Notes under the pieces: model-generated
What the model saw: only the letters and a program-made list of their open reading frames with translations
Told to the model about the DNA's origin: nothing
Databases searched by the model: none
Origin: Zygnema circumcarinatum SAG 698-1b
Lineage: Eukaryota; Plantae; Zygnematophyceae
Direction of reading: 5' to 3'
Assembly (NCBI GenBank): GCA_037447605.1
Contig: CM074822.1
Span: 457,492 to 521,491 of the forward strand
Length of the DNA: 64,000 nt
Part shown: piece after piece, positions 36,901 to 58,000 of the stretch
Layout of the letters: each line of letters opens with the position of its first letter
Numbering within the stretch: the stretch's first letter is position 1
Translations under genes and position numbers: made by a program

Positions 36901-38612
36901 TATTCTCCTCCTTCATGTCTCAGAGTCTCTAAGAAAATTAGAATTTTGTTCTTGCAGGCCTGCCAGCTGGTGGACCAAGCCCGCTAGTGGGCAGACTCCT
37001 CATCCTCGTGGGAGCGGGAGGTGCTGGACGCTCCCTTGCATTCGGCTCTACACAGAGTGGAGCTATACTCGTGGTGGCTGATTTGGACCAGGGTAACGTT
37101 TCTTTGCATCTCCCGTCAGCTTGGGGTTTCCGTTTGGTACGCAACGATCTGTCTGTGACATATACACACAATAGTTAGGGAAAGGTCAGTGAGGTGTCAA
37201 TGGTACTTTGCGCACGATGGCTTTTGCTGTGCATCCTTTCTTCCGTTTCACTCAGTGTGTGGTGTTGGCAACGGTCACAGAATTCATCATTAGCAGCTGC
37301 GAAAGATTCAGTGTGTATACGTTTGGTGTGTGTGTGTGTGTTTCAGTGTGACCTCCTTTCCTCATTTCTGACTAGTTTAGCCCTGTGTCTCGTCTACAGA
37401 AAGGGCAAAGGCCTTGGCCGACATTTTCAATGGCGGCACTGCCACTGTTAAGGAAGTGGCTGTTCTCAACTCTGCGGAGCTGATGGTGAAGAAGTTTGCC
37501 CCTCATTCCACGAAGGCGCCAGTCCTTGCTCACATGACCCCTGTGGGCATGGTGCCCAAAGTGGAGAACACTCTCTTCACTCAGGTGAGCGGCCGTCCAA
37601 AGATGCAGTTACAGAACACGAGAGTCTGCAGGCGTTTCCCATATTATCTCCCCCTCCGTAGGCACACCTGCAGCCAATCGCCTTCCGACCATAAGCCTTT
37701 CGCCAAGTTCTGCATGTTAGCTTTGCCTCACGCCTTACTCAACTTTGTCGACCTCAGTCGACTTAGTTGAGCAGTCAGCAGACAGCATCCGCAAGCCAGG
37801 CTTTCTGCAGATGCGCATGATGTTGATGTGTGGGTGATGTATGAGTATATGGTATGATTCGGTTGATCATGATGTATGATGCAAGGGTATGCAGGACATG
37901 CTGGGAGGATATGCCGTCGTCTTTGATGCGGTGTACACGCCTCCCGAGACGCGGCTGCTGCGAGAGGCCAAGGCTGCGGGATGCACCCCTGTGAGCGGAG
38001 TGGAGATGTTTGTGCGCCAAGGGGCTGATCAGTTCTTCAACTTCACAGATCGCATGCGTGAGTGCAGCCTTTCTCTTTCCTCTTCCCGTCCCACTCTCTT
38101 CCAGAGGGTCGTTCGCTTGTCCTTGTGCCGCTCACTGGCCTCTGTGCTTCGCGCCAGTTATCCCTGTGAAGGACGAGATTATGATGATGGATGGGATTCG
38201 TTTGGGATGATTTTCTTTTTGTTCAAAGCAGAGGTTGATGTAAGGGTCTTTAGAGTTTGCAGGCCTTTCAAGGCTTTATGTAACTAGAAGCTTTGGCTGT
38301 CTGAAGGCGCAAGCTACGGGGTGATGTGTATGATGTATTATTATGTAATTTCTCTCCTCTCTCTCTCTCGTCTCTCCCCTCCCACTCTCTCTCTCCTTCT
38401 CCCTCACTCTCTCTTTCGTTTCCTTTCCCTGCCACTTCATTCTTCTTCTCTCTCTCCCGTCTCTTCCCTCCCTCCCCTCCCCCTCTCGCCCCACTCTTCC
38501 TCTCTCCCCCTTTTACAAGGTATGGTGTCTGATTATGGTGTATGAGTTCACGTGAGCAGCTTCCAAGGACATCATGCGAGAGAAGCTGCTATCGGAGATC
38601 CGAGGCCATTGA
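33925..38612 (+). CDS. aroDE: Bifunctional 3-dehydroquinate dehydratase/shikimate dehydrogenase, paralog 1 (divergent), 10 exons (33925-34124, 34522-34627, 34905-35132, 35743-36092, 36443-36506, 36741-36855, 36958-37092, 37400-37584, 37895-38057, 38560-38612); possible upstream in-frame start at 33592
   Basis: GADIVDLRLD, YRPKWEGG.YEG, FVDVEL, IVSYHN, AKVVTTA, PVGHSKSP, GFSVTLPHK, AIGAVN, NTD, GAGGAG, FDAVYTP, SGVEMFVRQ..QF; exon phases are consistent. Confidence 0.93.
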
Positions 38613-55000: not shown

Positions 55001-58000
55001 TTTCCTTTCCTTCTCCTTGTCCTTTCCTTTCCTTTCCTTTCCTTTCCTTTCCTTTCCTTTCCTTTCCTTTACTTTCCTTTCCTTTCCTTCTCCTTGTCCT
55101 TTCCTTTCCTTTCCTTTCCTTTCCTTTCCTTTCCTTTCCTTTCCTTTCCTTTCCTTTCCTTTCCTTCCCTTCCCTTTCCTTTCCTTCCCTTTCCTTCCCT
55201 TCCCTTCCCTTTCCTTTCCTTCCCTTTCCTTCCCTTTCCTTCCCTTTCCTTCCCTTTCCTTCCCTTTCCTTCCCTTCCCTTTCCTTCCCTTCCCTTCCCT
55301 TCCCTTTCCTTTCCTTTCCTTTACTTTCCCTCCCCTTCTTAAACCCAATCTCCATTGCAGGTCCCAATCATAGCCCTCTCTATGGGCCCCCGTGGCGAAA
55401 TCAGTCGACTTTTGGCCCCCAAATTTGGCGGATTTCTCACATTTGCAACATTGGAAGCTGGGCAAGAAACTGCACCCGGGCAGCCCACAGTTTCAGACCT
55501 TCTGAATGTGTATCATATAAAGAGAGTGGGTCGGCTTACAAAGGTTTTTGGGGTGATTGCAAACCCCGTTAGACACAGCAAAAGTCCTCTCCTTCACAAT
55601 GCAGCAATGGCGGCTGTTGGGTTCGACGGAGTCTATGTTCCGCTGCTCGTTGACGATGTGAATCGGTTTTTTAAGGTGTTTGATACGCCGGATTTTGTGG
55701 GGTATAGGTGAGGAATTCTGAAACATTCTACCCTCAGAAAGGGGGAGAGAAGAGAGGGAGAGAGAGAGGTGTAACTTGAGAAAGAAGCTTGAGAGAGAGT
55801 GAGAAAAAGAGAGAGAGGAAGGGAGGGAGAGAGAGAGGGGGGCATGACTTCAAAGAAGGAGCTTGTGGTGGGGTGTAGGTGAGGAACCCTGACAATTTGA
55901 CAAACCCTAAGCATTCTACCTTCAAAAAGGGGGAGAGGAGAGAGGGAGAGAGAGAGGTGTGACTTGAAAAAGAAGCTTGAGAGAGAGTGAGAGAGAGAGA
56001 AAGAGGAAGGGAGGGAGAGAGAGAGGTGTAACTTGAAAAAGAAGTTTGAGAGAGAGTGAGAAAAGGAGAGAGGGGAAGGGAGGGAGAGAGAGAGGTGTAA
56101 CTTGAAATAGAAGATTGAGAGAGTGTGAGAAAGGGAGAGAGAGGAAGGGAGGGAGTGAGAGAGGTGTACCTTGAAAAAGAAGCTTGAGAGAGAGTGAGAA
56201 AGAGAGACAGAGGAAGGGAGGGAGAGAGAGAGGTTTACCTTGAAAACGAAGTTTGAGCGAGAGTGAGAAAGAGAGAGAGAGGAAGGGAGGGAGAGAGAGA
56301 GAGAGAGAGAGAGGGGGTCTGACTTGAGAGAAGGAGGTTGTGGTGGGGTTCAGCGTTACCATTCCGCACAAGCAGACGGTTCTTCCCCTCTGCCAGGAAG
56401 TGGACGATGTTGCAAAGGTGCAGTCCTTTACCTTTGCACTCTCCCCCTCTCTTATCTCCCTCCCCTTCTCTGTTGGTAAAGCGAGAAACAGCTCAAGCTT
56501 GAGCTTTGGGATGCAAGAATTTATCCAAGTGTTGTTAAGAACATTTTCACTTTCTGTTAAGTTTAAGAGTCACTTTTATGCATGAAACTTTGGCTACTAT
56601 CTTTGACCTCTTTATCTTTACCCCTTGTCAAAACCCACCCCCTTTTTTCTAAGCATGTGCTGCTATTCGCAGGCCATCGGCGCGGTGAACAACGTTGTGC
56701 GCCGAGCGGACGGGTCGCTCGCTGCGCGCAACACGGACTGGAACGCGTGCACGGCCGCTATAGAGGACGGTCTCAGGGCGGCGGAAGGTGGGAGGGAGAG
56801 AGAGAGAGGGAGAGAGAGAGAGAGAGGGAGAGAGAAGGGCGATGTTGGGAGATGAGAGCGAGAGAGAGAGAGAGGGTCGAATGTAGAGCTTGCATCTTGT
56901 GCATTGCATTGTGCCCTCCCAAACTCCCCTCCCACTCTCCCAACCTCCCCCCGCTCTCTCCCAAACTCCCCTCTCCCCCTCTCCCAACCTCCCCTCACTC
57001 TCTCTCCCAACCTTCCCCCGCTCTCTCTCTCTCTCACCGTTCCCCTTTCACTCTCCCAACCTCCCCCCGCTCTCTCTCTCCCCTCTCCTCTCCCCTCTCT
57101 CTCTCCTCTCCTCTCTCCCTCTCTCTAACTCTCCCTCTCCCTCTCCCCTCTCCCCTCTTTCTCTCCTCTCTCTCCTCTCCCCCTCTCTCTCCCTCTCTCC
57201 CCTCTCTCCCCTCTCCCCCTCTCCCCCCCTCTCTCTCCCTCTCCTCTCCCCTCTCTCTCTCTCTACTCTCCTCTCTTTCTCTCCCTCTCTCCCCNNNNNN
57301 NNNNCCCCCTCTCTCTCCCCCCCCTCTCCCTCTCTCCCCCTCTCCCTCTCTCCCCCCCTCTCTCCCTCCCCTCCCCTCCCTCCCTCTCCCTCTCTCTCTC
57401 TCTCTCTCCCCCAGGCCCCGGCGCGGACCCCCTCCTTAGCCCCCTTGCGGGCCGCCTCCTTGTGGTGGTGGGCGCGGGCGGGTCCGGGCGGGCGCTCGCC
57501 TTCGGGGCGAAGAGGCGAGGGGCGACGCTCGTGCTCGCGGACGATGACCAGGGTAGGGCCACCCCCCCCCCAAGTTATATACACAATACAGCTCGCTAGA
57601 GAAACAACCCTAAAACCCTAAATTCCTAGAACTCTTCAACTCTAGAACCCTTCAACCTTAAAACCCTTCAACCCCTGAAGCCCTTCAACCCTCGAACTCT
57701 AAAACCCTTCAACCCTTCAACCTTGAAACCCTAGAACCTTAAAACCCTTCAACCCTCGAACTCTAAACCCTTCAAACCCATACAACCTTGAAACCCTAGA
57801 ACCTTTAAACCGTACAAACCTACAACAACCCCCACAACCCTATATCCTTACAACCCTTCAACCCTATAACCCTACAACCCTTGAAACCTACAACCCTACA
57901 ACCGTTAAACCCTACAACCCCTGAACCCTAAACACGAGCACTGCATGGAAATCAGAGCGTGCGAAGGAGATAGCGGCCATATGGAGCGAGAGCACGGTCC

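Follow-up and report, generated by a model that had tools for sequence, protein, structure and literature searches.

The window analyzed here, a stretch of 64,000 nucleotides of Zygnema circumcarinatum SAG 698-1b (GenBank assembly GCA_037447605.1, contig CM074822.1, positions 457,492 to 521,491 of the forward strand), carries two same-strand (+), ten-exon genes for a bifunctional dehydroquinase-shikimate dehydrogenase (DHQase-SDH) of the plant AroDE type. The first gene, par1, spans positions 33925 to 38612 of the window and encodes 532 amino acids, and the second, par2, spans 52022 to 60846 and encodes 552 amino acids. In both, DHquinase_I is followed by Shikimate_dh_N, the Rossmann domain, and SDH_C in one spliced, continuous frame, and over their full length the proteins are 44 to 56% identical to named plant and algal DHQase-SDHs. 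The Pfam families DHquinase_I, Shikimate_dh_N, and SDH_C were matched by single exons of both genes. Pfam retrieved no match for Rossmann exons 7 and 8, which are short and divergent, so that this is no evidence against the fold.

The distinctive feature of both proteins lies at the end of Rossmann strand β2. The classical N-R-T/S/N triad at this site, which binds the 2′-phosphate of NADP, is absent, and an acidic residue replaces the N-R pair: par1 reads D-L-D (codons GAT TTG GAC, 37080 to 37088, + strand, in the context ...LVVADLDQ|ERA) and par2 reads D-D-D (codons GAC GAT GAC, 57540 to 57548, + strand, in the context ...LVLADDDQ|ERA), just as the original prediction had it and as direct reading of the codons shows. 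The bar marks a phase-1 intron that splits Q from E after the motif in both genes. An acidic side chain where strand β2 ends is an established marker of NAD binding. The triad aligns to N483-R484-T485 of the Arabidopsis dehydroquinate dehydratase/SDH (DQD/SDH), and the alignment with PDB entries puts the site at ...VVIAN of the Arabidopsis chains 2gpt and 2o7s.

Structure and transcription of the two genes

Translated comparison of the two regions gave nine blocks of conserved sequence, collinear on the + strand, and splice sites and phases then gave two complete open frames, the short last exons being located via an ortholog (described below) and the conserved C-terminal pattern ...PAPxxIMRxxV. 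The par1 exons, established by paralog comparison and splice sites, are situated at 33925-34124, 34522-34627, 34905-35132, 35743-36092, 36443-36506, 36741-36855, 36958-37092, 37400-37584, 37895-38057, and 38560-38612 (+ strand). Those of par2, a model backed in part by spliced contigs, are situated at 52022-52224, 53300-53405, 53743-53994, 55361-55707, 56354-56417, 56673-56787, 57415-57552, 57956-58143, 58919-59081, and 60764-60846 (+ strand). Intron 2 of par1 (34628 to 34904) is of the GC-AG type (AAG|GCAAGT), while its other introns and the matching intron of par2 are GT-AG.

All nine intron positions coincide between par1 and par2, as do their phases. The original prediction had taken the shared positions as the sign of a local duplication; the positions stand, but they do not make the duplication a recent one, and it is in fact old, since the proteins are only 56% identical in amino acids and their synonymous divergence (dS) is approximately 2.6. 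Nor are the genes, which had been described as tandem, adjacent to each other: at least one other + strand gene (long open reading frames at 40953 to 43940) lies between them.

Spliced Logan contigs from four runs of two studies reproduce the par2 joints 55707|56354, 56417|56673, 57552|57956, and 58143|58919 exactly, and the contigs covering the par2 exons, that with the D-D-D motif included, show no differing letters. Exons 6 and 7 are bridged by contigs from three runs (X2-10, X3-12, and X4-19), in which the 16 letters (8 + 8) between 56779 and 57423 are exactly those that the junction 56787|57415 predicts, bringing to five the junctions backed by spliced contigs. The join of exons 3 and 4 is visible as a loose end at 55356, and contig X2-10 extends about 890 letters past exon 9, the last exon being placed by its C-terminal pattern. 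By the evidence of these contigs, par2 is transcribed and spliced as modeled. In the same runs (X1 to X5), 0.49 to 0.62 of the sampled words of 35700 to 38100 are present, 42% of that stretch being exon, which suggests that par1 is transcribed as well.

The assembly contains two gaps of ten N in this region. The first (57295 to 57304) falls inside par2 intron 6 (56788 to 57414), in CT-rich low-complexity sequence, and is without effect on the par2 coding sequence, given that the contigs bridging exons 6 and 7 show the expected letters. The second (49070 to 49079) is intergenic, between par1 and par2. The introns in the window are 100 to 1,700 bases long and rich in repeats, those of par2 (57560 to 57900, 58150 to 58250, and 59100 to 60760) holding a CT microsatellite and degenerate telomere-like (CCCTAAA-type) repeats. 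The word depth in contigs reaches approximately 1,750 to 2,900 at 58114 to 58247, versus 5 to 80 on exons, which points to a high-copy repeat, and a further repeat lies at 59320 to 59456, within par2 intron 9.

Distribution and phylogeny of the acidic motif

Homologs were collected by a profile search with the largest exon against 1.84 billion representatives, together with two word-index searches, giving a set that spans bacteria, chlorophytes, streptophyte algae, and land plants. The first position of the triad is N in 290 of 393 alignable family members, and among the classical references R occupies the second position in 27 of 27 and N the first in 25 of 27. The acidic motif is not the general state of algal enzymes, the case in which the original prediction would have fallen: Chara and Closterium (P0005) read N-R-S at 483 to 485, Chlorokybus N-R-R, Mesotaenium (P0364) N-R-N, and the chlorophytes N-R-x, with Mesostigma reading S-R-R. 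Selaginella and Ginkgo have N-R-N, and proteins of the quinate dehydrogenase (QDH) type from seed plants have D-I-D.

Only three database proteins display the pattern of the window genes, namely ACF05190 of Spirogyra varians, which reads V-A-D-L-D-L-D-R-A, and the products of a Logan transcript (P0220) and a EukProt transcript (P0221). In the protein collections no match above 60% to the window proteins was found except for P0137 (84%) and P0477 (a single exon). The latter, from a 1,270-base contig of an ENA assembly, is an exon 6 fragment that matches par1 in all but one residue, with an intron at the same place after ...REKEG; this near identity indicates that another public assembly holds a nearly identical par1 gene.

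P0137 comes from locus L001, a genomic contig of 10.7 kb obtained in a separate sequencing run, which carries a par1 ortholog. This ortholog is 74% identical to par1 overall and 83% identical in the SDH half, reads V-V-A-D-L-D-Q-Q-R-A at the motif, and has the same HSKSP, SVTLPHK, AVNN, and LAHMTP as par1. It also shares the par1 exon ends but lacks intron 6; its introns span only 62 to 83 bases (L001 9606 to 9852). Between par1 and this ortholog, the proportion of synonymous differences (pS) is 0.83, which is saturated, whereas nonsynonymous divergence (dN) is 0.21, indicating that the par1 lineage is under purifying selection. The D-x-D motif is held by all six members of the group, that is, par1, par2, the L001 ortholog, and the three Spirogyra-type proteins, and its retention in all of them despite the saturated synonymous sites between par1 and its ortholog is more than would be expected by chance.

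The main tree, a careful maximum likelihood analysis of 48 rows under LG+C20+F+G4, unites these six sequences in one clade (support of 100/98) composed of par2, par1 with the L001 ortholog, and the Spirogyra trio, so that a distinct acidic-motif lineage in streptophyte algae, as had been proposed, is recovered. The duplication that gave rise to par1 and par2 precedes the divergence from the species that locus L001 represents. The clade is nested in the streptophytes, above Mesostigma and Chlorokybus, and stands apart both from the branch that joins Closterium with the land plants (99/96) and from the land-plant QDH clade (100/97), which includes a fern protein. Its placement relative to Chara, Closterium, and the land plants is not settled by the tree. 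An approximately unbiased (AU) test rejects the joining of the algal acidic clade with the QDHs (P = 0.00017, at a cost of 54 log-likelihood units); the constraint was the alternative grouping of the original prediction, with rows chosen after the tree had been viewed. The algal acidic clade arose independently of the seed-plant QDHs, in agreement with what had been suggested. Because the algal, QDH, and bacterial D-x-D groups are separate in the trees, the acidic triad arose at least three times in the family.

The capture of the algal clade from Planctomycetes was considered and rejected, since in a tree with their AroDE fusions added, built by a quick method, the clade stays within the streptophytes (support of 98) with the bacteria apart. 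Many AroDE fusions from Planctomycetes, Phycisphaerae, and metagenomes (P0372 to P0465) carry (L/V)AD(L/V/I)D and cluster separately from the bacterial fusions with N-R-T. The fern protein, from Ceratopteris richardii (P0353/P0124), has H-S-I-G-P, S-V-G-I-P-Y-K, and T-D-S-C at 483 to 485, and it groups with the seed-plant QDHs, so that the QDH lineage may predate the base of the seed plants, at which reviews place its origin.

Substrate site, dehydratase half, and comparison with known enzymes

The residues of the window proteins were compared with those of 27 classical sequences in the Arabidopsis numbering. The SDH halves of par1 and par2 both retain S336, S338, T381, K385, N406, T422, D423, Y550, Q578, and Q582. 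Besides the change of N483-R484 to D-L or D-D, both show T407N, the replacement of the invariant P468 by L, and that of one invariant G by N or S. The motifs reported by the original prediction are all found on the + strand: HSKSP at 35962 in par1 and 55574 in par2; SVTLPHK at 36441 in par1 and SVTIPHK at 56352 in par2; A-V-N-N, in which N406 is kept and T407 has become N, at 36750 to 36761 and 56682 to 56693; and L-A-H-M-T-P, where classical enzymes have L-A-N-T-T-S, at 37525 to 37542 and 58084 to 58101. The histidine of the last motif is common to all six members of the D-x-D clade and occurs also in some N-R-T bacterial enzymes, so that alone it is no cofactor marker. T381G and S338G, the substitutions that confer quinate activity (PMC7752791), are present in neither protein, which retain S-V-T and H-S-K-S-P. 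Judged by these residues, the substrate site of both enzymes is shikimate-type rather than quinate-type, as had been anticipated, with T407N as the exception.

The catalytic histidine and the Schiff-base lysine of the dehydratase are present in both proteins, as are Lys385 and Asp423 of the SDH half. The dehydratase half of par2 is fully canonical. In par1 and its L001 ortholog, the invariant S-A-P-G-Q substrate loop has given way to a histidine-rich G-H-G-E-W loop (...HHEGHGEW...; window 35743 to 35885, in exon 4, and L001 9055 to 9200). As the catalytic histidine and lysine remain, the dehydratase activity of par1 may be altered rather than lost.

The classical plant DQD/SDH (Arabidopsis At3g06350; PDB entries 2gpt, 2o7q, and 2o7s) has the same two-domain architecture as the window proteins, the same dehydratase histidine and lysine, the GAGGxG loop, and the same ten SDH active-site residues, and par2 is approximately 50 to 56% identical to seed-plant SDHs. 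The window genes differ from it by the acidic triad, T407N, LAHMTP, P468L, and the lack of an N-terminal extension, and par1 differs also by the missing S-A-P-G-Q loop.

The seed-plant NAD-dependent QDHs (poplar QDH1/2 and Eucalyptus QDHa/b) share with the window genes D-x-D at 483 to 485, a ..TP.GM motif after strand β4, the absence of a transit peptide, and descent from DQD/SDH by duplication (PMC7752791). Unlike the window genes, which stand outside the land-plant QDH clade in a separate clade of independent origin, they have T381G, often S338G, H384Y, and a dead dehydratase (His to Tyr and R to Q).

The gallate-forming DQD/SDHs (Eucalyptus EcDQD/SDH2 and 3 and grapevine VvSDH3 and 4) resemble the window genes in bearing a substitution in the N406/T407/T422 hydrogen-bond network. 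The Eucalyptus enzymes are substituted at all three positions (PMC7752791), whereas par1 and par2 have T407N only. In contrast to the window genes, these enzymes keep N-R-T/S and use NADP+, and they are eudicot specific and unrelated to the algal clade. A legume subgroup in the alignment also reads G-A-I-N-N.

The nearest relatives, ACF05190, P0220, and P0221 of the Spirogyra type, are sister to the window genes (100/98) and share with them D-L-D, the histidine in L-x-H-x-T-P, and the absence of an N-terminal extension. They depart from the window genes in the dehydratase histidine, which is F or Y as in the QDHs, and in H335Q, P339Y, N406S, T407A, T422M, and Q578E. The pattern N406S, T407A, T422M, and Q578E recalls the gallate-forming Eucalyptus DQD/SDH2, and in one of the Spirogyra-type proteins, P0023, the catalytic K385 is replaced by R. 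The cDNA from Spirogyra varians was described by Han et al. 2009 (cited in PMC9343959) as a DHQ/SDH-like gene under cold regulation.

The motif itself recurs in Corynebacterium glutamicum QsuD (PDB entries 2nlo and 3jyo to 3jyq), where V-A-D-L-D-x-x-R-A-x-x-L-A-D after GxGGxG is identical to that of par1 and P0220 and is accompanied by ..ATPMGM. The QsuD chains 2nlo and 3jyo/3jyp/3jyq read ...QVADLDTSRAQALAD (Q-V-A-D-L-D-T-S-R-A-Q-A-L-A-D), residue for residue with ...AVADLDDSRAQEVAD of P0220, and par1 has ...VVADLDQERAKALAD at this site. QsuD differs from the window genes in being a monofunctional bacterial catabolic enzyme, and it is distant (E value of about 1e-4 over the Rossmann domain), so that the shared motif is convergent. 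The Corynebacterium quinate/shikimate dehydrogenase is reportedly NAD(H) dependent and catabolic.

Proposed cofactor preference and possible role

The reading that we favor, with moderate confidence, is that of par1 and par2 as NAD(H)-preferring shikimate/3-dehydroshikimate dehydrogenases and not as quinate enzymes. The preference is read by analogy from the A-D-L-D motif that par1 shares with the Corynebacterium quinate/shikimate dehydrogenase and from the rule for plant enzymes, by which NRT at 483 to 485 goes with NADP and DID with NAD, and which fits the assays (PMC7752791). In this proposal, the first aspartate would hydrogen-bond the adenine-ribose hydroxyls of NAD, and the loss of the arginine, together with the first and second aspartates, would repel the phosphate of NADP. 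The pocket would remain of the shikimate/3-dehydroshikimate type, with T407N at the position where gallate-forming plant enzymes re-orient 3-dehydroshikimate.

In both proteins, about nine residues precede the dehydratase domain, the start of the L001 ortholog coincides with that of par1, and in the P0220 transcripts the ATG is preceded, 10 codons upstream, by an in-frame stop. Given the lack of an N-terminal extension, both proteins probably act outside the plastid, a location that is plausible and that is also the case for the NAD-type QDHs, which are cytosolic (PMC7752791). There, an NAD+-linked enzyme would favor oxidation, from shikimate to 3-dehydroshikimate, and the product might be channeled into phenolics of the gallate or protocatechuate type. 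The idea of such onward use is speculative; it draws on T407N, on the gallate-derived pigments that accumulate in zygnematophyte relatives of Spirogyra, and on the reported expansion of DHQD/SDH in Ancylonema, which has nine copies. Of the quinate, protocatechuate, and gallate roles that the original prediction had put forward, all speculative, the quinate role appears the least likely, T381G and S338G being absent.

Several points weigh against this assignment. Motif rules are correlations, and the NAD preference rests on analogy of motifs; no cofactor assay for any enzyme of the clade was found in the searchable literature. Some SDH-family enzymes with nearby acidic residues, such as Escherichia coli YdiB, use both cofactors, and the basic R three places on (...QERA) is retained in the window genes. 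The missing N-terminal extension does not discriminate, since the classical gene models of Chara, Chlorokybus, Mesostigma, Ginkgo, and Amborella also lack it, and the RNA evidence leaves room for upstream exons of par1 and par2. With regard to gallate, only T407 is changed, while N406 and T422, which are also altered in the strongest gallate formers, are unchanged. Finally, if the genome is without a classical N-R-x copy, the flux of biosynthesis has to run through par1 and par2, which weakens the case for an oxidative, specialized role.

This last point leads to the alternative that survives best, although we consider it unlikely: par1 and par2 would be ordinary shikimate-pathway DHQase-SDHs, working with either cofactor or with NADH in the biosynthetic direction, and the motif would mark no specialized branch. 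It would agree with the fully canonical dehydratase half and substrate site of par2, with the good representation of this gene in RNA-type contigs and its 54 to 56% identity to the classical SDH of Ginkgo, and with the acidic type of the single DHQ/SDH cDNA that has been cloned from Spirogyra varians. However, other Zygnematophyceae (Closterium and Mesotaenium) have a classical N-R-x copy that groups with the land plants, apart from the acidic clade, which makes this clade look like an extra paralog and not a replacement.

It is less probable still that the enzymes remain NADP(H) dependent, with other residues compensating and the motif a neutral quirk of the lineage. The retained R of ...ERA, the exceptions known to motif rules, and the reliance of the proposed cofactor preference on the motif would allow for it, but the phosphate-contact positions are changed in three of three cases, two of them to acidic residues, and the change is kept across six sequences despite the saturated synonymous divergence. 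Moreover, a convergent change is found in the assayed NAD-type plant QDHs (PMC7752791), and the Corynebacterium enzyme has the same A-D-L-D. The weakest alternative, which we regard as improbable, is that par1 and par2 are functional analogs of the seed-plant NAD-QDHs that interconvert quinate and 3-dehydroquinate, for although they have the acidic triad and the ..TP.GM motif in common with them, par1 has lost the S-A-P-G-Q loop as the QDHs have, and the Corynebacterium enzyme that shares the A-D-L-D takes quinate as well as shikimate (as the title of 3jyo states), both activity-giving substitutions (PMC7752791) are missing, the catalytic histidine and lysine of the dehydratase are kept where QDHs lose the histidine, and the clade is separate in the phylogeny.

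Building on the preferred assignment of par1 and par2 as NAD(H)-linked shikimate dehydrogenases, a broader scenario can be put forward only tentatively. The clade would represent an old family of NAD+-linked, extraplastidic DHQase-SDH paralogs in the algae nearest to land plants, which would have arisen before or together with the Zygnematophyceae and later been lost in land plants, and which would drain shikimate-pathway intermediates oxidatively into gallate-type sunscreens (iron-gallate complexes and purpurogallin). The window genes would then correspond to a little-modified bifunctional stage and the Spirogyra type to a specialized, dehydratase-dead stage.

These results add to the known acidic-motif enzymes a second lineage of independent origin, found in streptophyte algae, where neither the acidic triad nor an NAD-type clade was found to be mentioned in the searchable literature. 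As the substrate site is still shikimate-type, the cofactor pocket changed ahead of the substrate pocket. Together, par2 (canonical except for the motif), par1 (with an altered dehydratase loop), and the Spirogyra type (with both sites remodeled) offer a natural series for the evolution of cofactor and substrate specificity. The window genes also encode candidates for the enzymes behind the gallate-derived pigments of Zygnematophyceae, whose origin is as yet unexplained. If the broader scenario holds, NAD-type chemistry would have been invented in this fold a third time, independently of the bacterial QsuD-like enzymes and the land-plant QDHs before it.

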